From assembly GCA_003427395.1 (NCBI GenBank), contig BFEA01000011.1:4431832-4495831 (forward strand): a DNA stretch of 64,000 nt. The letters run 5' to 3'. Position 1 is the stretch's first letter, and each line of letters begins with the position of its first letter. This stretch comes from Chara braunii. Lineage: Eukaryota > Plantae > Charophyceae. Below are positions 3,429-53,929 of the stretch, piece after piece. The translations under genes and the position numbers were made by a program. The notes under the pieces are model-generated. The model was not told the DNA's origin. It saw only the letters and a program-made list of their open reading frames with translations, and made no database searches.

Positions 3429-3928
3429 TCCTGACTCCGTCTTGATATACTAAAGTTATGAAGAAAAGATCGTGGGCAGGTAAATACGAAATCCTCCTTC
3501 TCTCCAACTAGACGAGGCTGACAAGAATAGCTTCTAAGGGAGCTAGTTTCACTTAGCGTCTTCTAACAGTGTCGGGTTCGGTGACGGCTGGGCGAAGGGG
3601 GAGCCACAGATCGTGACAGCCTAAGTAGACTGTGGCGAAAAGCTCTTCGAAGACAGTGCGGAGTAGTACGGCTACCTCCATAGCCGTGGCGCCATCATGT
3701 TGGTGACGTCAACGACTGTCCCAGTCCCGTCGTTACCGATGGGATAGCGCTTGGTCCGAAACGTAGCGCGCCGGCGGAAGCACTCCAGACGAACCCTCTC
3801 AGTTAAAATGGCGATTTCCGTGTTCTACGGAAATGTTCGTTCTAATTTTGCACATTTGGTGAGTAGTGGAGCAAGGCCCTTAGTGAAATTTCTCAGGACT
3901 ATGGTAGTCCTCGAAAAATGCCTCTTGG

Positions 3929-4458
3929 ATCCACTGGCCTAACTCAGTTGGTAAGGCACGCAAGTGGCATTCATGAGGTCTTGGGTTCAATCCCCGTTGG
4001 CCCCATGTACCTTCCTGGGCAACCTATGCCATTGGTTCCCCCGAGTGCCATTGAGCAGAGACTGTTGATGTTCATAGGGGAAGGGGACCGGAGGGGAAGC
4101 ATAGTCACTGGCCCATCGAAGAAGATCGGTCCTCGTGCTACCGGCTGACCCCTGGCCGGTATCCCCCGCCTGCTACAGCAGGTATCACACCTGCTGGCCG
4201 GTGCAGCTCCCGCATGCTCCCTGGTTGGCGGCTTGAGCACGGATGTCCTGCTACGGAGTTCCCCGTAATACTATAATAATGACAATAAAAAAGGCCTGAA
4301 AGAGGGTCCGGCCCAGATTCGACAGGTAATTGAATTGGTAGGGCAGTCTGTACCCTATTTCAATAAAAAAAAAAAGGCCTGAAAGGGGGTCCGGTCCAGA
4401 TTCGACAGGTAATTGAATTGGTTGGGCAGTCTATACCCTATTTCAAAAAAAAAAAAAA
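3929..4458 (+). mobile_element. tRNA-derived SINE, family 1 (tRNA-Ala(GGC)-like head) with a duplicated 3' tail
   Basis: A box (TAACTCAGTTGG) and B box (GGTTCAATCC), a body shared with copies at ~53930 and ~63200, a ~76-bp tail present twice, and poly(A). Confidence 0.9.
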
Positions 4459-17387: not shown

Positions 17388-17419
17388 GGTGAAAACGATC
17401 ACGGCCGACTACAGTCATT

Positions 17420-17627
17420 GGATCGTCCCGACCGTCCGTATTCCCGGATCGGATGGCCAGCAGGCGCGCGCGGAGGGCCCACCCGGAAAACCACATATAT
17501 GAGGCAGGCCCACCACTCCCTATTGGAACATCCCGACCGTCAGTATCCCCGGATCGGACGGCCAGCAGGTGCCCGCGAAGGGTCCTCCCGAAAAACTATA
17601 TATACGAGGGAGGGCCACCAGTTCCCA
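17420..17627. repeat. ~105-bp tandem duplication
   Basis: TCCCGACCGTC...CGGATCGGA...GGCCAGCAGG...GGCCCACCA occurs twice. Confidence 0.85.
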
Positions 17628-17942
17628 TTTTCGTTTCAGTTTGGCAACCCAGCGGTAGCGCAGCGCAGCGGAGGCTTGTGCCACAGCACAGCGCATTGGA
17701 GGCTCGTGTACAACGCGGCAACGCAGCGCAGGGATTCGGTCCGTGCATAGCAGACCACCTGCTCGACGCGACGACGGACCACAGCGCTGTCGAGAGGCGT
17801 GTTCAGCGCTACGACGGAGCGAGCATACGGCCCAAGATCGAGACGCACAACCACAGCGGAGCACCCCGAGTTTGAAGGATCGGACAATGAGGAAACAACC
17901 ACGCAGCCCAGCTGCAACCACGTAACGCCATGTGGCACTTCC

Positions 17943-19127
17943 GGTCGTTGAGTCGAACACGATCGTGCCTGATCGTCGAGTCGAACACGATCGCGCCCGA
18001 TCGTCGAGTCCAACACGATCGTGTCCGATCGTCGTGTCGAACACGATCGTGCCCGATCGTCGAGTCGAACACGACAGTGCCCGACAATCGAGTCGAACAC
18101 GATCGTGCCCGATGTCTGATTGTCGAGTCGAACACGCTCGTCGAGTCGAACACAGTCGTCGAGTCGAACACGATCTTCGAGTCGAACACGATCGTCGAGT
18201 CAAACACGATCGTCGAGTCGAACACGATCGTGCCCGATCGTCGACTCGAACACGATCGTTGAGTTGAACACGATACTGCCCGATCGTCGAGTCGAACACG
18301 GTAGTCGAGTCGAACACGACACTGCCCGATCGTCAAGTCGAACACGACACTGCCCAATCGTCGAGTCGAACACGACAGTGACTGATCGTCAAGTCAAACA
18401 CTATCGAGGAGTCGAACACTATCGAATAGTTGAACACGATAGTCGAGTCGAACAACGATCGTCGAGTCGAACACGATCGTCGAGTCGGATACGATAGTCG
18501 ATTCGAACACGATCGTCGATTGCGTTCGTCGAGTCGAACACGATAGTCGTGTCGAACACGATAGGCGAGTCGAACACGTCGAGTCGGACACGATCGTNNN
18601 NNNNNNNNNNNNNNNNNNNNNNNNNNNNNNNNNNNNNNNNNNNNNNNNNNNNNNNNNNNNNNNNNNNNNNNNNNNNNNNNNNNNNNNNNNNNNNNNNNNN
18701 NNNNNNNNNNNNNNNNNNNNNNNNNNNNNNNNNNNNNNNNNNNNNNNNNNNNNNNNNNNNNNNNNNNNNNNNNNNNNNNNNNNNNNNNNNNNNNNNNTCC
18801 GACGTCGAGTAGAACACGATCGTCGAGTCGAACACGATAGTCGAGTCGAACACGATCGTCGATTGCGTTCGTCGAGTCGAACACGATAGTCGAGTTGAAC
18901 ACGATCGTCGAATCGAACACGATCGTCGAGTCGGACACGATCGTCGAGTCGAACACGATCATCGAGTCGAACACGATCGTCGAGTCGAACACGATCGTCA
19001 ATTGCGTTCGTCGAGTCGAACACGATCGTCGAGTCCGACACGATCGTCGAGTCGAACACGATCGTCGATTGCGTTTGTCGAATCTAACACGATAGGTGAG
19101 TGCCCTGTCGTCGAGTCGAACACGATC
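17943..19127. repeat. CpG-rich ~18-bp tandem array (GTCGAGTCGAACACGATC), containing an assembly gap
   Basis: Dozens of directly visible units; N-run at 18598-18797. Confidence 0.97.
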
Positions 19128-19445
19128 CTTCCCTGTCCTCTAGTGGAACAAGATTGTGCGCGGTGCAATGTCATCGAATCGTTCATGATTGTGTGCAGTG
19201 CTATGGGCCGCGCACGTCGTATCCTGAAAGATCGTGCATGGGTTGTGTGCGTGGAATTATGGGCGTGGATTGCGCACGTAGATTCTGTGCATTGTGCTGT
19301 CGTGCAGCCTGGTTTGTTTCCATTGTTAGGGGGAGCGGGGTGAATAGTTCTATGCTGCTGTTGGTTGTTCTATTGTTGTTGTTGACCGTTGCCCTTGTGT
19401 CGTGCAAGGCGTCTTCTCTTCACTGTTGCTATGGAGATCTCTAAT

Positions 19446-20262
19446 ATGACCCCAACACTTTGGCATGCACGCAAGGCACACCCTTTCCCGCCTTGTGCGC
19501 TGTACGACCGACAATGTCAGGGCAACGTAACCTATGAAGGCGCTTGTCCAGAAGACTTCGAATGCGACCTTTGGATGAGAATCCTCCCGTTTGGCGACAA
19601 ACAGTTGGACTCGTGGGAGGAGTGCGAGTGGGTGAACATGACGGAGAGATGCCCGTGGGCGTGCGATTATGAGTTCGCGAATATGTTCGAATTCGGCAAA
19701 CGCATTCCCGTGCCGTTCGATGTGTTGCGTTCCGTGCGCTTGCCGCTACTGTGTAAAAAGCTTAAAAATAAGCCGTGTTATGGGGGTTTTGGACTGCGAA
19801 TACGTGACAACCTCGCCCCGCTCCTGGTGCCGTGTTATGGATCAGGAGTTACTCGATTGTGCGCGACATTCTCAGTTCCTCGATCATTATCCGTTGCGAT
19901 CTCCCGGTCTGTCGCCAGGAGCAGTTTCGTATTGTTGTGTGAGATTGCGTCTGACACACTTTATCTTCTGTAGGGTCCTCTGTATTGCCGTTTTGAGCAG
20001 GGCAAGAAACTTGACCGATGCTGTCGTGTATGTGTCCAGGAACGAGTTGTCTATGTCTGGGAGGGATATGTGTTTAGTTCAAAGAAGGGTAGATGGGAGA
20101 CTGAATATCGTGGTGGGTGGCCAGGTGGAGGATGTTGTTGCATGGCGTGAGGTCGAGGCTAAAGTCGTTTCAATTCGGGATGCTATAGGTGCTTCTCTCG
20201 TCGGGAACTCCGGGTTCGTGCGAATGACATACATTTCGGTGTTTGCTGAGACGGCGCAATAG
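19446..20262 (+). CDS. Possible small spliced gene within the transposon
   Basis: Two overlapping protein-like ORFs (Cys/Trp-rich first part) with an acceptor-like TTCTGTAG at 19973. Confidence 0.3.
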
Positions 20263-20804
20263 CTGACCTTCGAATCGCCAATTAGCGTGTTGAATGGCCT
20301 CAACGGCGGGATTGTTCCCCGTAGTCGGTAGATAGCCTTCGTCATATTGAATGGCCAAAACGGCATACTGAATGGCCGCAATGGCCGCAACAGCGAGATT
20401 GTTCCCCGTAGTCGATAGATAGCCTCGTGGAATTCGCATTGCGATTGCTGTTCTAAATGTGTTATTTCGATAACAATACGAGGTATCTGCTAGTTGTTCT
20501 CATCATGTGTTCAGTGCCCAAAAGTACACACGTTTGACGTTGTTGTCCTCATATTGTTTTTCGATTCATTGAAACCCGGGAATGATGACTTGTGTTTTTG
20601 GTTTGGCTGTGGACACCGACACATCGTTGCCAGCCGAGTGTTTGATTGTTGTTCTCATGTTGTGTTTCCTTTCAGAAAAAAAACTCGTTGTTCTGATGTT
20701 TTGCGTGCACAAACATTGAGCAGTCAATGTTTCTCCGTGTTAACCAGTGCCTGTGATCTGTTGTCTTGTGTTCTCGTGATCAAGTGCCCCTTTAGGCACC
20801 GTCC

Positions 20805-21362
20805 GCCGACCATTGTGTCGAACACGACAAACGTCGCACAGCACACCCCAGTGTCGCTGTCGTGTTCGACACGATGGTAGCCGCCGACCATTGTGTCGAA
20901 CACGACAAATGTCGCACAACACACCCTAGTGTCGCTGTCGTGTTCGACACGATGGTCGCCAGACGGTGCCCGTAAGGGCATGTGGTCGACTGTCGAACGG
21001 CAGACGACAGTGTCGCTGTCGTGTCGAACACGACAGTCAGCTCCCCTTCAGGCACCGTTTGGCGACCATCGTGTCAAACACGACATGGACACTGTTATCT
21101 GCGACCAGGCGGTGCATGAAGGGCCGCTTGGTCGACTGTCACACGACAGACAACAGTGTAACTATCGTGTCCAACACGACGGTTGGTCAGCCTGCGCAGT
21201 GCTGAGCTCGACGTCGAGCAGGACGACGAGTTGGTCGACCGTCGGGTTCGACACGACAGTGACACAACGACACCTCAATGTCGCTCTCGTGTCGAATTCG
21301 ACGGTACTGGAGGACGTCGTGGCACGGCCGTCGAGTTCGACACAACAGTGAAAACGACGACG
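20805..21362. repeat. Dispersed copies of the GTGTCGAACACGAC motif in both orientations
   Basis: Visible motif copies, including a ~78-bp tandem duplication. Confidence 0.9.
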
Positions 21363-21503
21363 AGCTGGCGGGCTGTGGCCCGTTTCCGTTGCTCTGTGTT
21401 CCTGTCTATTCTTGTTCTCAAGTGTTGTGGTGTTTGCACGTTGGCAAAGCAATGACTGCTTTCTCGCTTGTGCATTTTCTTCAGTTGCGACTAGCTACTC
21501 GAC

Positions 21504-24500
21504 ATGGATCGCGAGGGGAAGCCAAGCAAACGACGTACTAGTACTGGTTCCGGGAGCATGGAGCAGTCTCCGAAAAAACCGAAGGGGACACCAACGGCTG
21601 GCGTGGGGGCTGGCGACACATCGGGGTCTAAGGGCCACCGAACCCCAGTGCTGCGGGGTGCACCTTCTACGGGCACTCCTTCCGCCCATGTTCGAGGTTC
21701 GGGACCGGATTCGGCTGTGTTGATGACTGGTGGGGCTGCGGGTCAAGAAGAGGAGGCTACTGGTCGGCAGGGGAAATCTACGATGGACGTTGTGTCTAGG
21801 CGTAAAAGGTCTGGTGAGACATCCGTTGCAGGTGTGGGAGACGAGCTTTCTGTCGTCGACCACAAAGACAGGTGCTGGATGTTGGAGTGGGTGGGTGGAA
21901 TCGGGGAACCCTCGGGTGGGCTGGTTTTGTACGTGGTGATCAAAGATAACATTGTTCCGATTGGCGGTGTGGTGAAGTGGAGTGGAGGAAATTCACAGTT
22001 CGCCATGTTGGAGTTGACGATGGTCCTTAACGCTAGAGGTGAGCGGATGGCGAATGTCAAACGCGTTGCTCTTCGTTGGGCCAAACACGCTGGGTACGGC
22101 AAGAAGCTTTATGACATTTTCAATCCGCCCGGGACGAAGAAATTGATGTTGCCGGACCTTCGAGCAGTTTTCACATTCTTCGACAAAAATGTGGTCGCAG
22201 GGCATGAGCCGGTGGTGCATGCTTTCGACCGCATATCTAAACCGAAAAGCGTGCTTTCGTCGTCTTTGGAGGAGGCTCCGTCGTCGAAACCAATCATTAT
22301 AGGTGCCCGCCCACCGCCATCGCTTCGGACTACGGTTGCTGCGGAGGCGGCTCCGTCGTCGAAACCAATCATTATAGGTGTCCGCCCAACGCCATCGCTT
22401 CGGACTACGGTTGCTGCAACACGAGTTCCAAAATCTGGGCAGATCGGGGAGAAAGGTCCGTGTCGNGGGCAAATCATGCCGTCAGCCCCTGTGAAGCGTA
22501 GACCAACATCAACCAAGGAACCCGTTTCCTTGGTCCGCCCGCCACGCTATGAGTTGGTCATTCCTGCTGGGTCGCATTATTTTGGAGATGACGACGAGGA
22601 GAACAGCAAGGAAGATTGGGAGCGCGATGAAGAACGCGAAGAATATGAGGAGGGTGGCGAAGAAGAGGAAGTAGAGAGTGAGCACACAATCAGCGAGAGG
22701 GGTGGGCCAGGCGAATTGGAGGGTCGTCTAGGGGTTGAGTATGAGGACGAAGGGCAAGAAGAGGAAACGACCAGCGAGGGAGGGTATGAGATGTGCATTG
22801 GGGTTCCAAACGAATGCAGCTGCTCGCTTCGGGTCATGGGCATTGGGAAGCGGATCCAGGGAGCGGGGAAATGCACCGCGAAGTTGGGGTTGAGCCGGTG
22901 CATGCCGATGCAGCCCGACTAGCTGAGAAGAAAAGGAAGAACAGGCAAGAGAGGAGAAGTGCTTTGGACAGTAAGAAAACCAAGCAGGAGGGGGGAGCCA
23001 AGCAAGAGGAGGGCAAACTCAAGTTGAAAATGCTGGTAGTTGAGGAGGCCGTCCAACATACGCGGGAGGTTGAGGAGGCCATGAAGAAAAAACGGCAGCC
23101 AAGAAAAAAAGCAGCGAAGGGAGGTGTGATGGAAAAAACTTCCGTTTTTCCACCGGACCAGCCACAATCGGATGAAGACGCTGTGGGCAAGACAGTCACC
23201 AGACCGTCCGGTTTGCAGATTCTGCTGCCTGGGAATTCTTCTGGTCATCTTAGCAAAGACTTCTTCCTTGAGTTCGACGAGAATGGTAAACAGAGGCCGG
23301 AAATGCAGTTCATTTCTGTCAAGTTGGACAAGATTCTAGATATCCCTGATGAGAAATTCAGATATAATCAACGCTTCCTCGATCAGGAGCTTATTGATGA
23401 CCTTTACAAAACAATGGTTGAGTCGGGTGAGGCAGCTATCAGAGAGAGAACGACCGGGGCAGCCGGGGTGAATGTATGTGCATTGTCCGAGAAGCCTGTC
23501 CTTTTGTTGATTGAGCTACATGATACAATGCATATTGACGCTTCCGGTACGAATGTGAGGGCGAGAAGAGTGACGCCCGGTGAATTCGATCTCCAATCCG
23601 TGCGCAAGTACTACTGGTACCCTCTCAGTGGTCAACACAATGTTGCGGCGGCGAGGAAATGTTCTCAAGAACGCCCTGACATCGCCCGTGAGCTCCGTTT
23701 GGATTGCTGGACTGCAAGGCCTGTTTACTATCCGGATAGGAGCATGGAGAATTACTGCACCTTGAACACTTTCCAAAATGCGAAGGACAAATGGAATACT
23801 CCTCCGCACCAGATTGCTATCATTAAGAACATACGAAAGTTGTGGCAAGCAGCCGGTCGTCCAGAAGCTATAGGCGGATCTGCTGCAGACGTCAAAAATA
23901 AGGATTACAGAGAGTTTGCGGCAATGACTCTGCGCGCGATCGGGAGTGATCATTTGGTTACTCTTTCACTTCAGGCTTGGAGCAAGGAGTGGTCCGACTT
24001 CCTCGGGCCTTATATGGTATTGGCAAGGGCGACGGGCGATGTGTTCGAGAAGGTGCAACAAGTGTATTCTGCTTGGGAGAATGGACAGTTGCCGAGGAGA
24101 GATGGTGTGAAGCCTGCCACCAAACAAGGTGAATCGGGGAAGCGTCGAGACCTGGTCCCGGATTTGAGTTGGAAAAAGGAGTCAGGGTTCCAGTGCACTG
24201 GATTCAGGGTACTAGATGACCTGGTTACCTCGTGGCTGTGCGCGATCCGGATGTCAGATCATGGAAGGCTATGTCTACGTTGGGGAGGCGTGAGAGGCTT
24301 CAGTTGTTGCGAGACATTCTCACGGGAAGTGTCATACTGGCTCCAAGGCTAAGTAAAGTTGCTCACACTGCCGGGAAACATTCGATGGAGACATACGTGG
24401 AAATGGTGAAGCAGGAAAGAGCAATGTTGAGAATGTTTTACTACTTCGTCTTCATTTCTGACCCTCACAAGAAGCCGTCAGAGTGGAAGGAACNATTCTN

Positions 24501-27500
24501 CGACAACCTTTCTNATTTGTTCNNTAGNTATTGTGATCAAGGATNGACATCGNAGAGGTGGATCGACCAGCGACGACATTTCAAAGAAACGAGTTGGGTG
24601 AGGTCATTTCCGGCTACACTTGGAGGCGGGGATGAAAAAGGAGAGGAGGGCTTCAAGAAAACAAAATCGCTTGCAAACAAATGCCCCGAAGAGTTCATTC
24701 AATTTGTCAACAAGTTGTTGCGTAGATCTGAAACTGGGGGTTCGCATAGCATTCGTATGTCGGGGCAAGCGAGATATATATATTTCCAGAAACAGAACGT
24801 GACATCTGTATTCGTGTCGTTCCAGTGGGAACCGAACGATGTTTCAGACGAGATGGATTGCAAGGAGATGTTTAGAGCCGTCACACACCTGACGTGCCAC
24901 ACAGCCGTTCTGGATTTGTGCCGCCCGACCCAGATGGGTGCGTGGACTGAACAAGTGTTTCACGGACTCAAGAAGTTCATGGATAAACTTGGCGGCGAGT
25001 ATTGGACATTGTTGTGCTTCGTTCCACGCCCTTGCGAGTTCACATTCTTGAGGCGAGTCGCGATGTGGGACATTCAATTGGATCTTCTCAAATGGACTCG
25101 TCTACAACAAACAAAGGGGAAAGTGTATAAGGTTGCAAACTTGCCTTTGGAGGACACAGACAGAATGGTCGTCATCATGTACTCCAACGACGGGGATTTT
25201 TATCGCAACACTATTCTCTTGTTTGAAGATATTCAAGCTGCAGGTTCATCATCTGCCGAGCGGGTGACTGACATATCGACACTTGTGCAGAGAGAGAGAA
25301 AGCCGAAGATGTTGACTGATGTCGTGGAGAAAAACTTTCTACCATCAAAGTGGAAAATGGCAGGTATGGATCCACCGGAGAAAGTGGTCTATGATGGTAT
25401 GGAAAGGGAGCCGAATGCGATGGTGGAGACATTGGAGCATTTTTGTCATGCGGATGAGGCCGTCGTTTTCCTCGGGAAAGGTCATGCGGGATTGGTTTGG
25501 GAGTTGTTAAAGAGTCACCGTCATTGCATTGTGCTAGAAGGGGAGGGTATGAAGTTCAAGTTCCTCACTCAGTTCATTGACAAGATGGTCAAAACTCGAG
25601 ATTACTACACCAACTTTACTAAGCCGCCTCCTCGATATGATGAAGGGCGTGATCTCGTCTACAAGGTTGGCCAAAACGTGGTCAATATTTGGGAGTTTCT
25701 CTTCGAAACAAAGTCGCAAGACAGAGGGGAACATACTTATGTCCTCAGAAGAATAAAAGTGGAGAAGCTCTTGAGGGGTTATCATAAAGCACCATCGAAG
25801 AGGGAGGTTTCATTTCTCGACCGCTTGGAGACAATGTACTTCGACCAACAAATCGGGGCATTTACAATCGCAGGTTATGCGACTTGTTTTGTGGATGGTG
25901 AGGACTTTGATGCCGATGACTCAGAAGAAGAGAGTATTGATGGCACTTTGCAAGCGGTTTTGGCAGCTGAGAGGCAAAGAGCTTGTAGCCCGGCTTCGCA
26001 TTCGCAGAGAATGGGTGTTCCAGGCACATCGTCCGGTTCTGGAGGAGCTTCGAGCATGGCGGTTTCAACGGATCAGTTAATGACTCATCCGCCGACTTCT
26101 TCTATTGTTACACCGACTCAGATGGCGGGCAATACGATGACGGTGGCATCAGGAGACATTCTGGATCCGAATGTTCTAGCAATGCTCTCCCCAGAGTTGG
26201 TGGAAACTCTGGCACCATTTGCACACAGCCCAAGTACTATTATGGAATTACTACGCTCTCGAACTCCACAACAACCGCCACCTGATGAGCCTTTGGAGTA
26301 CGAGATTGGAGACACAATCCCTGCAGACATTCGACTGCTTCCGGGGCCTATAGTGTGCCGAGACGATTATACGGTGACGGATGATGCCACGTGGGGTTAT
26401 CACATCATATGGCACCCCCAACACTTCCAACCTCCATTGGCGAGAGGGAGGTGGATTATGGCTATAAAAAAAGAAGGGGAGTGGCAGTTTTGCCTCCATA
26501 GACGTATGTCAGGATCGAACTTTCTGAAACATGTCAAAAATCAGATTGTCAAGCGACTCATGCGACTTAATCCGGAGGTTTCTCAATCAAGACTAATGTA
26601 AGAACAGAAAAAAATTTCCAAAAGTTCAAAACATCGCAGTGGCTTGAGTATCTGGAAGAGTTCTATGATAGACAAACCAGCCCGGCTTATGGATATTATT
26701 GGCATGTCAGAGAAGATCTTGGGGAGAGGAAAAAATCAAGCGGCGGTGGTGACCATGGCAAGGGATCCGGATCGAGCGGAGGTGCGCATGGCAAAGGATT
26801 GCGATCGGGGAGCGGTGCAAGTGACAAGGGTCCGGAACCAAATGACGGTGCAAGGGGCAAGGACGCAAGTCATGGGGAACGACAACAAACCGAAAAGTCT
26901 AAGGGGTGTCAAGCAACAGAAGGCAAGGGATCAGCACCAAGCGGCGGTGGGCATGGCAAACCTACAGGACCAAGCGGCGGTGGTTCAACTGTCGAAGGGT
27001 CTCAGGGGCCTCAAGAAACAGGGCGCAAGGGATCAGGATTGAGTGGTGGCTTAACTGTCGAAGGGTCCCACGGTCGAGTCGAACACGACAATGGCTTCGC
27101 ATTGGAGCGTTCCCAGCTTGACCAAGCGAAGAAACTCACGGTCTAGTCGAACCCGACAGTGGGATCGGAAACGATCGTCGGTGCGACTGGCAAGGCTTTG
27201 GGACCAGGGGGGGGCAGTACAACTATCGACGGTGCTTCACCTGTCAAAGAGTCACACGGTCGTGTCGGACACGACACTCGTCCAGCATTCGAGCGCTCGC
27301 GGCTTGACCAAGCGAAGAAACTCACTGTCGAGTCAAACCGACAGTGGGATCGGGATCAATCGTCGATACAAGTGGCAAGGCTTCGGAACCAATCGACGTT
27401 GTTTCACCTGTCGAAGGCTCACACGGTTGAGTCGAACACGGCAGGGGTCCACTATTGGAGCGCTCCCAGCTTGAGCGAGCGGAGAAACTCGTGGTTGAGT

Positions 27501-29430
27501 CAAAACCGACACAGCAATAGGGATTGATTGCCGGTGTGAGTGTCAAAACTTCGAACGAAAAGGAGATGTGAGTTGCGAGGGCGTGAGTACAGCTGACCAA
27601 GTTTGGGCGACTACGATACTAGTGGGCGACAATGTCGCTATGGAAGTGGATATTACTGGTACACTCACGGAATTGCAGATGCCGTCGTCAACGATGCCAG
27701 CCGAAGTAAGCGGCACTTTCCAGGATACTTTTGAGGGCGTAAAGGAGGAAGAAACTTTCCATGTACAGGGCATCGAAGAGGATGAAGGACATATAGTACT
27801 CAGTACACCGGAGGAAGCTGTACTTGTACAACCTCAACAAATGCTTGAACAACCTCAAACACCACAGTCTGCTAACCTCATGATAACTATCGAGGAATCT
27901 CCTATTGCGCCATTGCATATGGAAGGTGTGACAAAAGGTCGTGTTGAAGAAAAACTGAGAGTTAGTCATCGAGGTGAGCACTTTCTTATCTTAGGAGCAA
28001 TATCTAATACTATATGCGGATTAGTGGGTACATCACATGCACTCATCTCCCATTGTGTCGATCCCTCAGATGTATTGTTTATTTACCTAGCTTTGGAACT
28101 GTGCGTTTTCTGAAGAAAAATACTACAATTGTTTTGTATGAAGACTTACTGCAATTGCCATATATTTTGTATTGGTACTCATGAGTCAGTTTCAACAACG
28201 GAAAGTCGGACTTGTAACTCATTATGTTTTATTTTGTCAATCATGCATGGCGACGAAAAGAACTGTGGAAAACGACACATGTACACTCGCAAAGGAAGAG
28301 AGAGAAGAATATCATTCGTCGTGGTTTGCAAGCTTTGTCAACTTTGCCGTTATTGCCAAAAAATGAGAGAAGAAGTCGTACACCCATGACATTTCCATCT
28401 GTGAAGCCAACTGCCTTAAGGATGTTTAAAGCTGTTGAAATAAGCCTCACAGAAGGGAAGAAATTGCATCGCGCAGGTTGCAGTTTATCTGTTATGGATA
28501 GCAACACTGATGACGAAACAGATAGACAACCAACAATATGAACTCATATTTATGTAGTCTATCACTTGTTTTTGTGTGAAGTCTTAGTCGCTCTATTGTT
28601 GTTTATATATGTGTTTGTATGCAGTGCATGACCCTTCGTTCCAGATTCCTTTAGCAACAGTACGCCTTACTGTAGAAGAAAAGGAGTATCTTGAAATGAT
28701 TACCGGCAGCACTGAAGAGAATGAAGAATACGGCATTGTCGATTACAAGGGGAGATGGAAGGTGGAAAAGAAAGACGCCATGCTCGCCGCCAAAGATGGA
28801 GAATGGTTAAATGATGAAGTCGTCAATTTGTACCTGTTAGCCATTCAGATCACCAATGACTACATCAAGAAGGTGGATTCGACATGTGCAGAAGTGGCAA
28901 AAGATGAAAGTTCTTGTAGCATTCCATCTGTGCATATTCTAAATTCTTTTTTCTTTCCCGGATTGTCAAAAGCTCAGTCCGCTGAAATCGCATACTCCGA
29001 AGGGACGAGATGGGTGAAGGACATAAATCTTTTCAATTTTGATCTGGTAATTATCCCTCTCCATTTCGGAAATCATTGGGTTTTAGCTTATGTCAGTATA
29101 GATCGCTCTGAGTGTAAATTCCGCCTCGTAGACTCTCTCCATCGTGTTGACTACGGTCCAACCCTCGAACTTTTGGCAGGTTTTTTCAGAGCAGAGTTTC
29201 AGCGACAAAATCTTCGAGAAAAATATCATGTGGAGGAGCCTACATCCTACTTTGATACATCAGTAGATGGGATTCCTGCTCAAGAGGATTCTTCTAGTTG
29301 TGGTGTTTTTATGTTAGGTTTTGCATCTTTGCTTGCAAAATGTCACTTCCCTCCGTTCGGTTTCTCACAAGATAGTATTCCTGATATGAGACTTAGAATA
29401 ACATTTGACATTTTGTCCATGGTTAGATAG
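21504..29430 (+). pseudogene. Large multidomain cargo gene: ParB/DGQHR-like, degenerate DNA methyltransferase-like and Ulp1 protease; frameshifted, with predicted intron 27974-28624
   Basis: Consecutive overlapping same-strand ORFs (21504, 22793, 24232, ~26620-27973, 28609) joined by frameshifts or single stops. GT..AG intron with phase 1 at both ends. Confidence 0.7.
28625..29430 (+). CDS. Ulp1/SENP (peptidase C48) catalytic domain exon
   Basis: WLNDEVVNLY, LNSFFF, IPLHFGNHW (His), DSL (Asp) and QEDSSSCGVF (Gln/Cys); the triad is intact and the frame is open. Confidence 0.93.
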
Positions 29431-29837
29431 GAAAGTCGATGAGAAATTCAGTTTCTAGGTTTGGAAAAATGAGGTTGACATGTTTACTTAGTGTGAACAT
29501 TCTGGGTGAAAATGTGTATTGTAGGCAATTTTAAAAATATGTTGACAATGTATAATGACATTTCCTAGACTTCTCATCAATTGTTGATGAGGTTAGCGTG
29601 TTTTACTGTGTGACATGTTTACAGAGTGGATTGTCAATCCTTGAGTGACATTTTTGCAGCTTGTGTACGTGTGAATATTCGAGGTGAAAATTTTTGTTTA
29701 ATTTCCTTCAACAACTTTCATATATAACCATTGTTTTCTCGTTGTTTGCTTATTTTTTCCTCAGTTCTTAGTGTCATTTTACAATTAAAATAAAAAGTGA
29801 ACATGAAAACAATTTCACTTTTAACGAAAGCACCGTT

Positions 29838-31562
29838 GGGACCAATTAAAAGGTGTTGGGGGGAGGAGTTGGCCGCCCACAGGATGGTGTGGCCACACAC
29901 ATCCTTTAGAGCCCACGGTCCGGGCCTGGGTATTGCAGGAGTGGCAATCTGACTCCCTCCAAACTCAAGGTAAGTTGATGAGCAGAAAGGGAGATGGGTC
30001 TATATGTTGGGGATGTTGGAGTTGAAAGTGATGTTCATCCTATGCATTTATGACCCCAAAAATACGGTGAGTGAAAGGAGGTTGTTTTTCGACAGTTTGG
30101 GAACGATGGTTCCAGAGGGGATCCCGCTCGTAATTGCAGGGGATTTCAACGCAGCCCCGAACATATCGCTTGATCGTTGGAACCTGCAGGTTTCCCCTTC
30201 TCACACGATAGAAGAGGATAAGCAGATTCGAGGGAAGCTATGCGACTCCCTCTCAGTATTTGACACGTTGCCCTGTCTACACCCGAATGCCCGCACATTT
30301 TCCTGCGTACGTGACAACGACCCTGCGAGGCAGATAAAGTTTTGTATCGACCTCGTCATCATCTCAAAAACGACCTGGAAGGAGCCCTTCGAGTCTTCGA
30401 CTAGCGGTTATCCTCCCGCGGAGCCCCCATCTGGGACTAAACTACAAAACGTGTGGATTGGTCCTCACAACATGAAAACGACCAGATCAAGGGTCGGGCT
30501 AGTATAAACTTAGCACATCCCTTATACTGGACAAACACTTCCAATCCCTCATCAAGGACATATGGCGATTCTGGCAGCAGCAAAAACCATAATTCGACTC
30601 AGAACTAGCATGGCTAAATAACAAGTTGTACTACATCGCAAGGAAACGCAATGAATATTTGAAAGAACGAGCAGCACAGAGGAACAAACATAAGATAGAG
30701 ATCCACAAAAAGGTCCATGATCTGGAGCAACAGGCAGACTCACAAGCTCAAGAACGGGACATTGAACAGTTGAAAAAACAATTGTTGCAATTCTCGCAGC
30801 AAAGATGGCAAGGACTAATTAAATGCAGTAAATTAGTCCATGTTAACCAGGAAGCTACCATGGACACCAGATTTTTCAACATGGCCTCGGGCAGAACGAG
30901 GTGAACAGTTATCGAACCCTCTTTGATTTAGACAAGGGGGATGACAGTCTAGCCACCTCCACGTCACATTGTACCCACGTCACTAGGATATTTTTTCAAA
31001 AACCATACATGTCTCAGTATGGAAGAGGGATCTAAACGATTTTCTTAAGGCTATACAGAGAGTGTTGTCAACACAACAAATTGAAAGTGTATATGCTCTG
31101 CTGACAAAGCAAGAGATATGGATAGCGCTGCACCAAATGGACGAAGGGAAGACCCCAGGTATTGATGGGTTCCCCAAGGAGTTTTGGGAGTCCATGTTGC
31201 CGATCCTGAGCTCTGACTTGTGGTCATACTACCAAAAGGTATGGGAGGAGGGATGTATGGGGGAAGTGGTTGGACAACGGGTTTTGATGCTCCTGTATAA
31301 GAAAGGGGATAAGATAAACCTTAGGAACTACAAACCCATCACCCTTCTGACATTTGTCTGTAAAATGTTGGCATTGGCCTTGGCCAATTGTATGGTCGGG
31401 GTCTTGGAGGATATCTTTCACCCAACTCAAACTGACTTCATATGCAACCCAAACATCCAAGAAAACATTCTTCTTGTTAATGAGATAGTTAACTTGTCTC
31501 GACGTCATGACCAAAATGCGACAATCATTTTTATTGACTTCGAAAAGGCTTGCGACAGTGTG
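29838..31562 (+). mobile_element. LINE-C, middle piece (APE body to early RT), inverted relative to the other two pieces
   Basis: GVAI, AGDFN, KTPGIDGFP, NYKPITLL and IDFEKACDSV. It starts at the transposon TSD and ends just before the RT segment found at 17387. Confidence 0.88.
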
Positions 31563-31744
31563 TCATTGTTCGCGTTCTGGGAGAATCAGCGCAGCGGTCC
31601 GCCAACGTCGACACGACAACTGCCCCGCTCTCCAGGTTAGTGTCGCTTCGGCCAACACGGAAAGAGAAAAGCCTCTGTGGACGGCCGTGTCCAGTGCTGG
31701 TTTATCGGTGACGTCAACAAGTTTTCTCCAACACTTTCACCGCA

Positions 31745-32692
31745 GTCGTTGTCGTGTCAAACACGATGGTCGATACGGTCGTCGTCGTGTCGAACACGAT
31801 GGTCGATACGGTCGTCGTCGTGTTGAACACGATCGTTGTCGTGTCCGACACGCTGGTCGTCGTGTCAAACACGATGGTCGTCGTGTTGAACATGATCGTT
31901 GTCGTGTTNNNNNNNNNNNNNNNNNNNNNNNNNNNNNNNNNNNNNNNNNNNNNNNNNNNNNNNNNNNNNNNNNNNNNNNNNNNNNNNNNNNNNNNNNNNN
32001 NNNNNNNNNNNNNNNNNNNNNNNNNNNNNNNNNNNNNNNNNNNNNNNNNNNNNNNNNNNNNNNNNNNNNNNNNNNNNNNNNNNNNNNNNNNNNNNNNNNN
32101 NNNNNNNNNNNNNNNNNNNNNNNNNNNNNNNNNNNNNNNNNNNNNNNNNNNNNNNNNNNNNNNNNNNNNNNNNNNNNNNNNNNNNNNNGGTCGTCGTGTC
32201 AAACACGATGGTCGTCGTGTTGAACACGATCGTTGTCGTGTCCGACACGCTGGTCGTCGTGTCAAACACGATGGTCGTCGTGTCCGACACGGTCATCGTC
32301 GTGTCGAACATGATGGTCGTCGTGCCGAACACGATCCTTGTCGTGTCGAACACGCTGGTTGTCGTGTCGAACACGATCAGCGTCGGGTCGAACACGATCT
32401 CCATCGCGTCAAACATGACCGTCGTCGTGTCGAACGCTCTCGTCCTCGTGTCCGGCTCGTTGTCATGCACGGCCGTCGTCGTGACCGACGTCGTGTCGAA
32501 CACGGCCGTCGTATTGTCGAACACGACCGCCATCGTATCGAGCACGACCGTCTTCATGTCCGACACGATCGTCGACGATGGTCGTCGTGTCCTGCACGAT
32601 GGTCGTCGGGTCGGACACGGTGGCCGTCGTGCCGAGCACGGCGGTCGTCGTGTCCGCCACGGTCAAACGCGGTCTTGGTCGTGTCGAACACC
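31745..32692. repeat. CpG-rich ~21-bp tandem array (GTCGTCGTGTCGAACACGATG), containing an assembly gap
   Basis: Same core motif as the 18-kb array with a different period; N-run at 31909-32188. Confidence 0.97.
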
Positions 32693-32989
32693 CTGCTCTT
32701 TTTGGCCACGACCCCCACCTACGTTTCGACTTGCACAGAGTTTAATGCGAGTTGCGCCAGCAGAACATAGTGCCCGGGTGACTGTCTTTTGTCTCTTGTA
32801 GCACTGATTGCTTATTGCGAGATTGCGCCACGACCCCCACCATGTAATATACAATGGAGCTCCTATCGTGTTGGGCGCGACATTGGCGTTGCCGCAGTCG
32901 TTTGCCTTCTCAGCCTGGCTATCTGGAAATCCGTCGTGCGTCATGGAATGAACTCTACGCGAATTTTGCTTCGAATCCTCGGAGTCTGG

Positions 32990-33258
32990 TACGCGGGAAT
33001 CAAGACGGGGAACCCTTCCGTGTTGGGCGAGGCGGTCGCGTTGCCACGATGGTTTTCCTGCTCACTCGTGGCAGTTTTCCTGCCCGCTCTTCGTGGGTGG
33101 TGAGTACCACGCGTGCCGGGAATCAAGATGGGGGACCCTTCCATGTTGGGCGAGGCGGTCGCTTTGCCACGATGGTACGGTCGCGTTGCCACGATGGTAT
33201 TCTTGCTCACTCGTGGCAGTTTTCCTGCCCGCTTTGCGTGGGTGGTGATTACCACGCG
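32990..33258. repeat. ~125-bp tandem duplication upstream of the transposase
   Basis: GGGAATCAAGA...TTGGGCGAGGCGGTCGC...TCACTCGTGGCAGTTTTCCTGCCCGCT occurs twice. Confidence 0.85.
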
Positions 33259-33818
33259 TGTCCAGTCGCTGCAGTTCCTGGAGTAATATAGAATCTTTCC
33301 TATCAATGTTCTTGTGCCAAGCTGTGTGCTGCGCGCCAGAGTCTTCGCCGATCCGCTGTTGGTGCCCGCTGGGTTTTGCACGCCGTGGTCTCTGCCTTTC
33401 CGAAGCTGGTGCCCGACGTGACATGTGCTGCGTTTCCTGTTGCGCGTCAAGATCTCCGCCTTTTCAATGTTGTTGCACGCTGTGTTTCCAGTTGCTGGTG
33501 CCCCGACTCGACATGTGCTACGCTTCCCACTGTCGTTCGATCTCCGACTTGGACAAACTCTTTCGCGTGTATTGCGCCTTTGGCACGGATTGGGCCTGAC
33601 GACTGGATTGCCACCCTGATTCCATGGTCGTGTGTTATCCTCTCTCGGATGTTTCCTGTTCCCCTCCGTCCAGTGTAGGGCTGTGTTTCTCAAGGTCATT
33701 TGTACGGCTGTGTTTCTTACTGTTGTGTAGGGATGGTTGTCTGCTCCATTTCATTAACCTCTGATTTTCGCCTTTTGACAGTGGTCCGCTGTTTTGTTGT
33801 CGCATACACGTCTCATGC

Positions 33819-36735
33819 ATGGCTTGTGGTGTGCATGCTATGCCACAGCAGACTTGCAGCACAACCTTGGAAAGCATGGACTGTGTGGCGTCTAATACAA
33901 TGCTCAATGAGGATTTTCCTCCACCGCACCTGCCATTTTGTTCACAAGATGTTCGAAGTGGTCACGAACATGTCGATAATGCTCCAGAATCTCCTGCTCG
34001 TAAGATGTCACGAAATATTGCGTGTGCGGACACTACATGTGAAAGTGTGTATCCCGTCCTTCGATGCCCGGTTCGAACCTGTGAGCAGAGAGTGCTGAAG
34101 GTTAGGAGGGTAAGACCTCCTCTACTGACAATGACGCATCCGATGTCGATCGTGTTGTATGGGTGCCGAGGAGTTCACTTCGATATTTCGAGTACACAGG
34201 TCTTCTGTTTGGTGAGAGTGATGAAGGTGGTTCAGATTCAAGTGCTTCGGTGTCGTCTAGTGCTGATAGTTCTCCAGATAAAACCGATCTTCCACAAACG
34301 TACGCTGACCGGAACAGTGACCACTGTTGTCGAAATGACGATGAGAATTGTGACGTGATCTCTGATTTCGATGACATTTTTCCAAAACGTCTGTCCTCAG
34401 AGAAGCGTCCTTATACTTTTCGTCTCAGAATGCCGCGGTCAAAAAAGATTCTGCAATCAGTTCATAGAAAACTCACAAAAAAAACACTGGCGAGTGTGTG
34501 TGGGCAGGTTTGCTGTAAGTGAGAGTGTTGCGCTCAGATGACCCTGGACGACATCAAAGCTGTCCGGAGCGCATACTACTCTAAGAACTAGCAGAGCAGG
34601 GATGCGTGGTGGGTTGAAACGTTGAAGAGGTTCACCTTCATAGAAGATGAAAAAGAGATTGTTCAACCTATTGTGGGGAGACGAAAGGTATGCATTAGTG
34701 CTTGGTGTTTCACACTGGGTGTATGTAGGAATACATTTCTAAAAAAAAGGATGACTTTGTCAAAAGGCTACAATATGTCGGAGCATGGCAGTACTGGACT
34801 CAGACGCACATCAGCAACATATGCGACGATGGACGGGAAACTAAGCTTCTTCGTGCGAGACAACGGAGATTCCATGCCCAATGACATGAAGATCAAAGAG
34901 GGGGAATCAAGAGTGGTGTTGAGATTGCCTGCTTGCTATAACAAGGTTGATATTTATAAGTTGCTACAGTCGCAATTCGACAACGTGGGTGCTCCTTGTG
35001 TTTCTCTCCAAGTTTTTTACAACATGTGGAGAACGCAGTTTTGGCATGTGAAATTCCAAGACATTGATCAAAACTTTGCGAAATGCGAGAAATGTGTTGA
35101 ATACAAAGAATCTATCAATTCCGTAAAGTTCGTGCTGTGCGTGAGTACTTTGTTTCGTTACGCGAGAAACACTTGGACTTGCAGCTCCAACATCGTGTTG
35201 CGTATGAGGTGTGGAAGGATGAGTCGAAGAGACCGGGTTCCAACAGTTTGTGCATCATCATTGACAGCATGAACCAAAGCAAAACCAACATTCCACACTT
35301 TGGCGAAGAGAACAAATCGAAGGCATTCGCAAATATTCCGATGTTGAAAACGAATCTAACAGCTATTATTGCACACGGTCTCTCACCATCGGTCCATGTT
35401 CACACATGGTACCCTTGCTATCCACATGATTCTAATGCTGTAGTGTCATCCATTATGAAAGTTCTCCGCGACATCCAGACGACGAATGACTTGCCTCCTA
35501 AACTGAGGATACAAGCTGACAACTGTTGGAGAGAAAACAAAAACAGATACGTTTTGGCACTCGCTACAACTTTGGTGAAATTTGGCTTCTTCAAAGAACT
35601 CGAATTCGGTTTTATGTTAGTGGGACACACACATACGGGCGTTGATGCCACTTTCAGTCATTTCTCTCGCAAACTGAAAATGCACGATGCATATACCATG
35701 CTCGACCTCTTCAAGCTCGTTGCCAGTTCTAAAAAAGAACGTTCATCGTGCACATTCATGGATGAAATTGCTGATTGGCGAGCTGCTGTTAAGCCCTTCC
35801 TGGTCAAGAGACTGACCGGTCATACTCGTCCACAAGCATTTAGGTTTTATATGCAGGATGACAATCCTGTGTTCCAGTGGAAAGAGTATTGCACTTCTCC
35901 TGAATGGTCTGCTCCAGTCTATTGCTTTAAACGAGATGAAAACAAAGCATTTGCTGGACCCGAATGACCATTCATGCCATCACCTGTTCCGCCGTCAGCT
36001 TCTCTGCCTACTAAAGATAGGAATTCGGATTTCAAATCGGGAATTGAAGGTGTGAAGACGTTTGTTGGGTGGTTGGAGAACAAGAGGCACGAGTGGTTGG
36101 GAATGAAAGATGAGGTTAGTTTCTCAAAGGAGAGTGTTCTTTCACACTGGAAAACTTTCCTCGAGACAGTCGAGGAGCATTACGGGTCTGGGTTTGCGAA
36201 AACTTCACTCAAGGCTGACTTCTGGCCCTCACAAGACAAAATTAAGAAGGATGATCCAAATGATATTGATATTGCCTTCCTCTTGAAGAGCAATGAGAAT
36301 AAGGAGCCGTTGTTCGTTGGACCGACCAACGAGCGTCCAAAGGCGGAACTCAACCCAGTTGTGGATGTCGAAAAAGGTCAATTTGTTCTCTTGCGTCCTT
36401 CCCAAGATGATATCGATGAGGGAGTTCCTGTATGAAAGGGTAGAGTCATTTCCGATGTAGACAACGATATGAAGTCGCTAACTTTCAATCATATTCTTAT
36501 TGAATATTGGGTGCCACAACCTATTGCTAAACGTCTTTCTGTGCAATATTCGAACGCATGGAAGAAGACATGAAAGAAAGACAACACAACATCACAGCAG
36601 TGGCAGCATGTAGACTGTGTTGTGTGGAGCTGGACATCCAAGAGATTGCATTTAGAAAATGAATTGCATATTCCAAAATCGGCCAGAGAGAAGGCCTTGG
36701 TATGCCTTTCATTTTCCGATAATGAAGATCAGTAG
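33819..36735 (+). pseudogene. Sola-like DDD transposase, disrupted
   Basis: CxxC (FAKCEKC) precedes the triad IIID...QADNCWRENKN...FMLVGHTHTGVDATFS. Several in-frame stops and a frameshift near 35120. The start position is uncertain. Confidence 0.82.
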
Positions 36736-36854
36736 GTTTTCAATAGGTTTTGAAGAAAAGCTAATCGTAGTTCTTTACACGTATTAGTACGTTATTTAGT
36801 TGTCATTGAGCTTTTATTTATATATATTTAAACTGTATTTTCATGTGTTGCAGA

Positions 36855-37466
36855 ATGGTTCAACCATTTGTGACGACTGAATGACCGCCAAGTAACATGG
36901 TGTGGGGAAGAAATATATGGCATGATATGGGTCCAGTTTTCTTCATATCTGAACTGATTTTTGACAGTGCAGTACTCAGTGTTAGAGGTGTGGATGCCCC
37001 ACCGGAAGATTGGGAACATTCTCCTCGAGAATCACTCTATATTTGTGGTCGGAGGTGTTGTGGAACGAGAACATACCCGCGAGAAGTGCTCGCACCCTTT
37101 TCGAAATTGTATTATTCAACAGTCAAATTCTGCCACAACAATTTGAACGTGATGACCTTGTTTTGTGCAGCGACAACTGTTCGAGGTCGGTGCAAAATAT
37201 CTTTCCTTATTTATAATGACTATTCTACAAGTGCAAGTGTTTCCAATGCAGACAACATCGATGAACGACGACGACAAGAATTCCGAAGGAGGATCATGAC
37301 ACTCATGGATGGGCTTGTGGACACGGCCATCAAATATTTCCGAAGTCTCATGCTGAGCAAATATGAAGTAATAGAAAGTTATATAGAGTACAAGGACCCG
37401 ACGTTTGACGGACAAACTAATACCATCATTGTAGAAGATTGGACAACTTATACAAGGACAGACTGA
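36855..37466 (+). CDS. Hypothetical protein or exon within the transposon
   Basis: 189-aa open frame preceded by a splice-acceptor-like TTGCAG; no recognisable motif. Confidence 0.35.
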
Positions 37467-38385
37467 AATGTTGTCTTGATCGCAGACTGAAATGTTGTCT
37501 TGATCGCATTAGTTTATCTTTGTAGTCGATCTAGTTACTAGGCTTGTTTTGCCTATTTTCGGAGTGTCGTTTGTGCTTTGCATTTAATTTTTTTTTTCCT
37601 CTTACTCGGTCAATGGCCTTGAGACATCATCTAAGTTCGAATAACCCAGTCCTGCATTAATATAGAGTTATTTGGTTATCCGAGTTCAGCGGGATTCGAA
37701 CTAAGGTTTGTGTTTTGACAGTTTATGTGTGATACTGCTTTCAAATTGCTTTTAATATTGAACTTTTGCACGTGTTTTCATTTCATTGTGTTGTTGTAGT
37801 TAAGCAAATTTTTTGTACGTGTTTTTTTAGTGTCCGTTGCACTTTGCTGTCAAATATTAATAGATATTTAAATTTTTTTCAAAGGTCACATGCAAGGTTT
37901 TTCTGTTCTTTCATGTTAGCCTTTAAGTTCAAGGAACATCAGATTCCGAACTGATTGAAATATTGTCAAGTTCAACTTGATCCGACACTCACTGAGTCTC
38001 ACGTTTTGCAATATGTGTNNATGNTGTGTAAGCTTGGTATTATAATTAATATAATAAATTGAATATGACTTCTTGGATTTTGCGATAGAATGGATGTATT
38101 CATGTTATGAAAGGTTGGGATAATATACAATGGTTAACTCATGAAACTTGTATTGATGCAGATACGCGACTTTCTTTAAAAATAGAATCATGGATAGTTG
38201 ACTAATGAAACTTGTATTGATGCGGATATGCAATTTTCTTTTCAATACTTGATTATATAATATTTGTCAATAAGATGCTAAAATCCTCTGCTCTTGTTGT
38301 TAAATTTACTTTTGTTCTGGCAAATTTGTTAATTTCATTATGTTCACTTTTTACAAAACATTTAATTTTTAACAAAAACACCGTT

Positions 38386-39290
38386 TCCCGGATTGCTTGT
38401 CGTTTGTCTGCGTCTGGGTTGCTAGGTCATTGACATTGATCGAACGAAGATCCAAGTCGGCCGCCCGCACATAGTGTCACCAGGCCGGGCTCCTGCAATA
38501 CAATGTGTCTATATCATCCATTTAATGCGCTCCCTTCCCTGCCCCTGGGGACCATGGGGTGCGTGTAGCTACAGCGGTTGTAGTGGCTGCCACAACCGCA
38601 AATCTCATCTGTCCACGTTCAAGATGTCGTGGCGGATCATTGCTCATATGCATCTGTAAACATCTTCTTCTGGCCAACATTGAACTGCCTTGATCTTAAA
38701 TCCTTGCAGGTCAAGTAAGGAGTTGTGGTTGTGCCATCGCAGTCCCTCAACTTTGTCGAAGAGGACATACAAATCAATTGGAGCGATTTGAAATCGGCTC
38801 TCACCGATCCTCTTGATAGCCCGGTAGCCAACTGTGTAACGTTTTAGACTAAATTTCCGGGCTTGGCGGGTGAAGGCAGTGTCCCTCCCTTCCGGGTTTT
38901 CACGGTCAACCGATAAGCCCCACCTCTGAAGTGTGACCCATCCCTTCCACTCCTCTCCTCCCCCTCCTGGTGGTGACAATCCCACTTCCCATCTTCCATC
39001 GGTCCTCCTCAATGGAATCACCAACACTCTATCATTCATCGACAAGGGTCTTTCATACAAACCCCGGTCTACCAAGTTCGGTGTCCTCATCAATGGAAGC
39101 CTCTAAAGTGTAACCCATCCCTTCCACTCCTCTCCTCCCCCTCCTGCGTGAGATCAGCCCTGCCTCGTCGGGGTCCTCCTCCTTCCCCTTCGTCGAATTA
39201 ACCCTCTCCTTGTCTACATATTGTTCGTTCCTCTTTTGTTGTGGAATAAACCAGAGCACAAAGTTGAGGCAGGGTTAAGTGAGAGATTAT
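38386..39290 (-). mobile_element. LINE-C, 5' piece (ORF1 C-terminus and APE N-terminus)
   Basis: The minus strand reads LRSINVNDL...DKRQAIR and joins through the GGGA TSD to DQLK at 29838+. ORF 38644..39093 loosely resembles the ORF1 C-terminal domain of LINE-A/B. The upstream boundary is uncertain. Confidence 0.75.
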
Positions 39291-53420: not shown

Positions 53421-53929
53421 CCCAGAAAAGTGGAAAAATTCCTTAATGAGGATGTATCCTCATCCTCATTAAGTGGTCCCCCCCTGTCGAAGGCTTCATC
53501 TATTGGTGGGGACTGACACCTGCTGGACAGTGGGTCCAGCATCCCAGTATGATGATACAACAGCAGTTACACAGAGCAAGTAATTTACCCAATTGGTAAG
53601 GGGGGGGGGGGGGGAAACCTCCTTTCTTGAACCACCAGTACATGCCAGCTACCGGCTGCGGGCCCCTTTGTGAGGCCGCCCACCACCTTTTCATTTTTTT
53701 AATCTACAGGCCTCCTAAATTTTCGTTGAGAAGGGCTCAAAACAGGTTCGACGGCATCCTTTTGTTGTTTTGTTTTTTGTTTTGTTTTGTTTTGTTTTGT
53801 TTTGTTTTGTTTTGTTTTGTTTTGTTTTTAAATTGAAACTCCCTTTTTTTTTCTTTTTTTTTTTTTTCTTTTTTTTTTTGAAGGAAAATAGCTTTTGAAA
53901 AAAAAAAAAAAACTCCCTTTTGGATGTTA

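Follow-up and report, generated by a model that had tools for sequence, protein, structure and literature searches.

The locus and its element

The stretch analysed here, referred to as the window, comprises 64,000 nucleotides of the Chara braunii genome (assembly GCA_003427395.1, contig BFEA01000011.1, forward-strand positions 4,431,832 to 4,495,831); coordinates below count from its first nucleotide. It contains a large DNA transposon inserted in a long interspersed nuclear element (LINE) of the L1 type. The transposon carries a gene for a DUF7869 transposase with a DDD triad and a long cargo gene whose predicted product combines a ParB/Srx-fold domain, a DNA methyltransferase (MTase) fold and a Ulp1-type SUMO protease. 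It also has two further open reading frames (ORF-X and ORF-Y), terminal inverted repeats (TIRs), a 4-bp target-site duplication (TSD) and arrays of a short palindrome (Table 1). Taken as a whole, the locus is probably best explained as a decayed, partly inverted copy of a Sola-like cut-and-paste transposon, autonomous and ~19.4 kb long, that resides in an L1 element.

The initial annotation held that two matching ends of about 30 bp become inverted repeats flanked by TCCC/TCCC once the segment 17388-31562 is turned round. The ends do match, at 84% over 32 nt (29806-29837 versus 38355-38385), and since GGGA follows 29837 and TCCC follows 38385, the restored order has a TCCC/TCCC TSD and a length of 19,358 bp. 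The inversion itself is borne out by four other copies (L002, L003, L005 and L006), in which plus-strand 17374 meets the reverse complement of 31552 head to head, with 60 bp between them that the window lacks. Its limits needed correction, the breakpoints starting at 17374 and 31552. The comparison with other copies shows that the inversion arose after insertion, by a microhomology-mediated double break that cost, at the second breakpoint, 60 bp of the element and roughly 20-25 LINE codons. When the segment is turned back, the LINE reverse transcriptase (RT) motifs DFEKACDSV and LARATTSVQVN are rejoined, less these codons, and the empty site translates as the N-terminus of an L1 endonuclease. 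The homologous-LINE comparison yielded no close copy of the host LINE as an empty-site control. Two separate tandem elements were ruled out by the four copies that join 17374 to 31552.

Sequencing reads, probably from the sample used for the assembly itself, gave a DNA contig that covers the cargo-side TIR, the TSD and the LINE (29800-31193) with 0 differences at a depth of about 10; a second contig (31168-31571) extends only 20 nt beyond the 31552 join. Read depth within the element is ~50-300 times that of the flank-spanning contig, and this excess is a rough sign of many copies, not a count. Both assembly gaps lie within tandem arrays and cross no gene. L002 and L005 traverse both without N, colinear with the window on either side, which rules out an assembly artefact at the gaps.

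The transposase motifs IID(G)MDQ, ADNC and HTHT(D)VD (at 35257, 35515 and 35626) are found in the window and in the other copies. From these catalytic motifs we take DUF7869 to be linked to Sola. According to PMC10741241, which draws on Bao et al. 2009, the Sola superfamily is characterized by a DDD transposase, a 4-bp TSD and TIRs of 11-1124 bp, some elements exceeding 15 kb. With its 4-bp TSD, TIRs and DUF7869 DDD transposase, the element fits the definition as given there; its TIR length lies within that span, and its size is towards the upper end for Sola elements. To this it adds a cargo of ~2,500 codons, two more ORFs and internal palindrome arrays.

Table 1. Coordinates of the element, its genes and its insertion site in the window
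Feature	Position	Strand	Remarks
Inversion breakpoint 1	17374..17387	.	14-bp microhomology common to LINE RT and element
Array 1	17941..19127	.	18/28-bp units, motif TCGAGTCGAACACGA, 38 copies; includes gap 18598-18797
ORF-X, conserved gene	19446..20259	+	frameshifted in window; no Pfam, PDB or PHROG match
Dispersed copies (n=11) of the same 15-bp palindrome, upstream of cargo gene	20813..21345	.	
Cargo exon 1	21504..27973	+	several frameshifts in window; invariant GAG/GTGAG donor at its end
ParB/Srx-fold domain, then helical region	23246..24109	+	YNQR at 23363, SGQH at 23627
Beta-class N6/N4 DNA methyltransferase fold	24781..25640	+	DLCxP for DPPY (24910), FLGKxHA for FxGxG (25468)
Predicted cargo exon 2, 228 nt, phase 1-1	28249..28476	+	acceptor AG mutated to AT in window
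Ulp1/C48 SUMO-type protease exon	28625..29430	+	Pfam PF02902, E 2.6e-17; invariant acceptor upstream
Cargo-side TIR	29806..29837	-	~31 bp, inward reading AACGGTG..; same end in L002, L004, L005, L007
TSD copy GGGA	29838..29841	.	TCCC after turning the segment back
Host L1-type LINE (endonuclease-RT)	29842..31551	+	5' part beyond 38389 (-), 3' part left of 17374 (-)
Inversion breakpoint 2	31552..31562	.	11-bp microhomology common to element and host LINE
Array 2	31745..32663	.	21/33-bp units, motif TCGTGTCGAACACGA, 25 copies; includes gap 31909-32188
DUF7869 DDD transposase	34106..36432	+	Pfam PF25273, E 4e-56; stops and frameshifts break the frame
ORF-Y, ORF or last transposase exon	36885..37463	+	adjoins transposase-side TIR
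Transposase-side TIR	38355..38385	+	
TSD copy TCCC	38386..38389	.	

An old lineage of elements in Chara

The element copies compared here (L001-L012) are loci of the same assembly; the scripted locus comparisons were run without eight metagenome loci (L023, L025-L027, L042 and L088-L090). The un-inverted order was found in four copies: divergent transposase and cargo genes with the arrays between them, ~31-bp TIRs and a 4-bp TSD, 19.4 kb in all. The initial annotation's picture of a Sola-like DDD transposase and a divergent cargo gene in one multi-copy TIR element is thereby upheld, the cargo remaining linked to the transposase and the TIR pair in other genomic copies. Close copies differ from the majority sequence by 2.7-3.8%, and all are broken. 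In an intact copy the two element ends are identical over their first 19 nt. TIRs of these elements share a start (AAC, six bases, then TT(C/T)GTTAAAA) and measure ~31 bp in the window and 33-50 bp in L010 and L012. TSDs elsewhere are perfect in L010 (CATC/CATC) and L012 (ACGT/ACGT) and agree at 3/4 bases in L002/L008 (ATAG/ATAA). A 14-bp subterminal sequence is present at both ends of the window element (29791-29804 and 38340-38353), in the orientation opposite to the TIRs.

More distant relatives retain the same plan. Ulp1 lies behind the MTase fold in 3/3 distant loci (26-30% cargo identity). L011 and L012 (~28%) have a divergent DUF7869-type transposase and cargo, and the families of L010 and L012 (likewise ~28%) are TIR-bounded with 4-bp TSDs. 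The comparison of these sequences shows an old, diversified Chara lineage with a common TIR type, 4-bp TSDs, a divergent cargo of ParB, degenerate amino-MTase and Ulp1 domains, ORF-X and a spaced palindrome specific to each family. The TIR-bounded element in L010 (5144-40908, TSD CATC) has a cargo, a hAT DUF659 piece and the motif GACCAT-NNN-ATGGTC, and no Sola transposase could be seen in it. A link between this cargo and hAT was not accepted: the hAT piece has large gaps around it, is enclosed by a Sola-type TIR pair and is probably nested. At L012:48155-51407 a second DUF7869 transposase and a TIR of the same type adjoin the first element, by clustering or nesting. A convergent cargo-transposase pair in L001 was ruled out, the transposase lying outside the L012 TIR pair.

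The ParB-MTase region is represented by 161 sequences at 50% clustering, and the module by itself makes up at least 150 clusters at 50% identity. Sixteen of the 17 representatives looked up are Chara braunii 'hypothetical proteins', and many annotated Chara genes are therefore transposon cargo. The remaining one, on a metagenome contig (P0027, JGI, 7.7 kb), is a 1419-aa ParB-MTase cargo of 34% identity. Where named, the protein relatives of one window-encoded protein are likewise all from Chara braunii (66-91% identity).

Architecture and selection of the cargo gene

Cargo pieces that are out of frame in the window lie in one frame in L004 and L007; this single frame in other copies rules out introns as the cause of the exon 1 frameshifts. 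The donor at 27973 and the acceptor at 28624 are invariant, and together with the acceptor at 28248 (mutated in the window) and the donor at 28476 they are all of phase 1. Purifying selection on exon 2 ends at the second donor. An alternative frame for exon 2 was ruled out by its phase and by a ratio of non-synonymous to synonymous substitution (dN/dS) above 1 against divergent copies. Given the phase-1 splice signals and the selection boundary at the second donor, Ulp1 is likely to be spliced to the ParB-MTase cargo; if splicing follows prediction, the protein has about 2,500 codons. The cargo has been maintained by selection during the spread of the element, purifying selection acting on all three domains: against the 77% and 68% subfamilies, dN/dS is 0.20 for ParB, 0.31 and 0.11 for the MTase fold, and 0.49 and 0.29 for Ulp1. 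A 75-bp duplication in the cargo gene (22268-22417) is specific to the window copy.

The three domains named in the initial annotation were recovered. Ulp1, claimed there as a SUMO protease, is a C48 protease of putative SUMO type in which the His-Asp-Cys triad and the oxyanion Gln are intact. The ParB and MTase parts drew a blank in Pfam, PHROGs and PDB sequence searches, in which the spliced cargo model was queried exon by exon; the folds of both were matched through confident AlphaFold models built from family alignments. For the ParB region (predicted local distance difference test, pLDDT, 85), the ParB/Srx fold takes all seven top places among 48,161 chains (Z 5.5-7.7), led by PadC (Z 7.7, root-mean-square deviation 3.1, 98 aligned). 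Foldseek's best hit was not significant (E 0.09), and the ParB/Srx match is moderate overall. For the MTase region (pLDDT 79), the model of the L004 orthologue gave a clear match to beta-class N6/N4 DNA MTases, both in Foldseek (E 5e-7) and with CcrM (Z 16.8, root-mean-square deviation 3.4, 214 aligned). Its Rossmann fold is permuted, the catalytic motif preceding the S-adenosylmethionine motif. The atlas models nearest to this MTase model are phage fusions of ParB_N with N6_N4_Mtase, a pairing typical of phages. The ParB pattern had no relatives among the viral or metagenome contigs scanned; fungal DUF3723 proteins reached a language-model feature score of 0.97 with the ParB part, a lead only, without alignment or hidden Markov model match.

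Both folds have altered signature motifs. The arginine motif GxxRxxA of CTPase ParB proteins is replaced by GQH(N/T)xAA in 54/57 sequences, with other pocket residues kept (N-x-R in 41/46, G-Q-H and an invariant Asn). In the MTase, (D/N/S)PP(Y/F) and FxGxG are replaced family-wide by DLCxP and FLGKxHA. As these changes are family-wide, they are conserved substitutions and not the decay of one copy. The 'pseudo-methyltransferase' of the initial annotation is probable, though not certain, because DLCxP, the motif in place of DPPY, is itself conserved. An enzyme of altered chemistry that marks element DNA (the CpG-rich palindromes, for instance) and thereby obstructs or imitates methylation by the host would account for the conservation, across ~28% identity, of the catalytic loop (Asp 19/21, Cys 18/21, Pro 19/21), motif I (Gly 25/27), the acidic residue after the next strand (24/24) and E-R-x-P. 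Eukaryotic N4C MTases of the same fold exist, moreover, in bdelloids and Marchantia. We nevertheless hold such an enzyme to be unlikely. DPPY has lost its aromatic residue and its first proline, and the spacing of FxGxG is gone as well, all of them required for amino methylation in characterized enzymes; DIRS1 elements, too, provide examples of MTase domains that are inactive (PMC4738411).

Family-specific palindromes

The palindrome TCG(T/A)GT-NNN-ACACGA is present in 78 copies within the element and in 0 copies in the remaining 44.7 kb of the window. The arrays lie between the two genes and not at the termini, as the initial annotation had it, the motif being absent from the TIRs and the subterminal kilobases; it is, in addition, dispersed upstream of the cargo gene and inside it. 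In the non-tandem region 11 dispersed copies were observed, against a shuffle mean of 0.29 and a maximum of 3, and two more lie within the cargo gene at 27074 and 27260, in its low-complexity tail.

L001, L010, L011 and L012 each have a palindrome of their own, the L012 element with 28 copies. In a table of four motifs by locus, the diagonal holds 78, 82, 26 and 9 copies in the motif's own family versus 0-3 in others. The window motif also has 5 copies in the related L007 (58% cargo identity). Palindromes occupy similar positions in L010, L011 and L012, and in these three as well as in the window and L007 the cargo gene and the region upstream of it hold clusters of them. The family-specific palindromes suggest, short of proof, that the element controls its own chromatin.

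The arrays could instead be neutral minisatellites grown from hairpin-prone DNA, with the cargo a passively carried gene: the units are tandem, array length varies between copies, and in recent copies the motif positions have mutated no differently from adjacent ones. We judge this very unlikely, since the flanks of the dispersed copies are unrelated, the corresponding places hold another motif in each family, and purifying selection acts on the cargo.

Accessory ORFs and neighbouring repeats

The initial annotation had neither ORF-X nor ORF-Y. ORF-X encodes ~230-350 aa and is 45-59% identical across families with ~28% cargo identity; it is better conserved than the cargo and occurs also apart from it. 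Counterparts lie at L012:35404-36474 and L005:7232-8209, with extra reverse copies in L010 and L012. ORF-Y had no family match in searches; a weak homologue stands at the same place in the distant family at L010:6199-7044 (-), with 22% identity over 164 aa and a pairwise E of 1e-6.

Other short internal tandem duplications of the element are at 17417-17620 (105 bp) and 20803-20960 (78 bp), besides the 75-bp one in the cargo gene. Elsewhere the window has two more decayed L1-type LINEs (279-3449, minus strand, and 4915-11104, plus strand), the latter with a hairpin of 109-bp arms at 7052-7275. A small dispersed family of repeats, similar to miniature inverted-repeat transposable elements or short interspersed nuclear elements, occurs in both orientations (4025-4246, 53909-54265 and 62786-63218).

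Which protein may read the palindromes

We infer that the palindromes serve as an address by which an element-encoded protein recognizes its own family, and that the cargo is a chromatin factor working for the element's own benefit. The ParB-MTase module, a phage-type combination of long standing, would contact DNA without normal methyl transfer. The predicted active Ulp1 would strip SUMO either off proteins involved in silencing or off the transposase, and would thus favour expression or transposition of the element. Precedents are VANC, which targets internal motifs of VANDAL elements (PMC5735166), and the AtMu1 transposase, which activates cognate copies sequence-specifically (bioRxiv 10.64898/2026.08.24.746577). 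As to the reader itself, the transposase is at least as likely as the cargo: we give the former nearly an even chance and regard the latter as possible though rather unlikely, while the absence of any reader seems improbable and a role of ORF-X or ORF-Y more improbable again.

With the cargo as reader, its ParB domain would bind the palindromes in the way that parS is bound by ParB, perhaps forming a spreading, nucleotide-gated clamp, and would bring Ulp1 to undo silencing in the manner of VANC. Spaced palindromes of 15-20 bp suit a dimeric ParB-type binder, the crowding of motifs at the cargo gene in five loci and the conserved pocket residues agree with it, and L010 and L007, in which no Sola transposase is visible, have kept both motif and cargo. 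Set against this, the arginine of the CTPase GxxR motif is replaced by Asn or Thr, and motifs persist in non-autonomous copies under any model. On this analogy, cargo reading is a tentative proposal that we consider somewhat doubtful.

Several further observations weigh against a cargo that reads the palindromes and removes SUMO. The same kind of palindrome is present on related transposase contigs without visible cargo. A helix-turn-helix behind the ParB domain was not established in the structural comparison. CpG transitions in the two arrays (3.4% and 6.4%, versus 4-6% in the rest of the element) give no sign of CpG protection, a weak test, given the mild CpG decay throughout these copies. 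The case for the Ulp1 fusion consists of splice signals, the limits of selection and ab initio gene models; the splice joints of the fusion are absent from RNA, where 2.6 Gb yielded 38 reads over 5.8 kb, none at 99% identity, mostly over the 3' end of Ulp1 and probably sense. The cargo-less palindrome loci, CpG transitions no rarer than elsewhere and near absence of RNA leave the initial annotation's claim that the cargo loads on its own arrays and counters silencing without direct support.

Alternatively, the palindromes may be sites of the transposase only, for autoregulation or as internal transposition enhancers, and the cargo may act without sequence specificity, e.g., by deSUMOylating the transposase or as a decoy. 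Metagenomic eukaryotic DUF7869 elements (L017:188-5500, L019, L031 and L032) carry 17-19-bp palindromes around and inside the transposase gene. TCCCAG-W-CTGGGA occurs 21 times in L017 and 14 times in L019, both around the gene and within it, and L031 and L032 have another palindrome flanking theirs on both sides. Dispersed palindromes are possibly a general, unreported trait of Sola-like elements. Furthermore, 0/72 metagenomic transposase loci had a match to ParB, MTase, Ulp1 or ORF-X, and the AtMu1 transposase is a precedent here too. Against this, the metagenome contigs are 1-12 kb long (4-6 kb for those with palindromes) and could miss a cargo, most of them have no array, and neither the TIRs nor the subterminal kilobases contain the motif. 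We regard transposase-only sites as quite conceivable, at less than an even chance.

The boldest form of cargo reading is the reuse of a phage-type ParB-methyltransferase module for parS-like self-recognition in a eukaryote: the cargo of each family would load on its own palindrome, spread over the element, deliver a SUMO protease and perhaps leave a non-standard DNA mark, with protein and palindrome codiverging in many families. We consider this improbable as a whole. Several families with different palindromes offer a ready cross-specificity test of transposon self-recognition. If the cargo is the reader, it would be the second VANC-like system, independent of the first and assembled from prokaryotic folds for partition and methylation, and it might supply sequence-targeted chromatin tools; should the transposase be the reader, transposase autoregulation would extend to Sola elements.

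Comparison with known systems

Literature searches, whose coverage was thin for subscription papers and Repbase Reports, found no relevant publication on this architecture. Although precedents exist for every part, none turned up for the combination in the literature searched, and the elements apparently form an undescribed lineage of giant DNA transposons.

VANDAL elements with VANC (PMC5735166) likewise are DNA transposons with an accessory gene and family-specific, tandemly multiplied short motifs in non-coding regions. They belong, however, to another superfamily, VANC is unrelated to the Chara cargo, and their motifs are 9-mers as opposed to the 15-20-bp palindromes here. No Pfam match to the VANC domains DUF1985/DUF287 or to a MuDR transposase was found in the element.

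Ulp1 is carried by Kaonashi Mutator-like elements, some CACTA elements and Zisupton. The Chara elements resemble such transposons in having captured a C48 protease, its triad intact, as the terminal part of a long accessory protein; here its predicted partners are ParB and MTase folds, and the carrier is Sola-like.

Some fungal DNA transposons carry TET/JBP, proposed to counter silencing (PMC12730594). The likeness lies in a DNA-modification-type domain of prokaryotic or phage origin; that domain is a dioxygenase found in 11 lineages there and an amino-MTase fold here, the latter seen only in Characeae-like data.

Phage ParB-Tls fusions of ParB_N with N6/N4 MTases (PMC4738411) share the placement of ParB/Srx N-terminal to a beta-class amino-MTase fold, with no sequence-level match in PHROGs, Pfam or PDB. 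The published eukaryotic offshoots are FHA-fused enzymes in haptophytes and ParB-HTH-fused enzymes in chlorophytes and chytrids (PMC4738411). In contrast to the phage fusions, the Chara cargo has a replaced catalytic motif and a predicted Ulp1 fusion, and it resides in a TIR transposon of a streptophyte.

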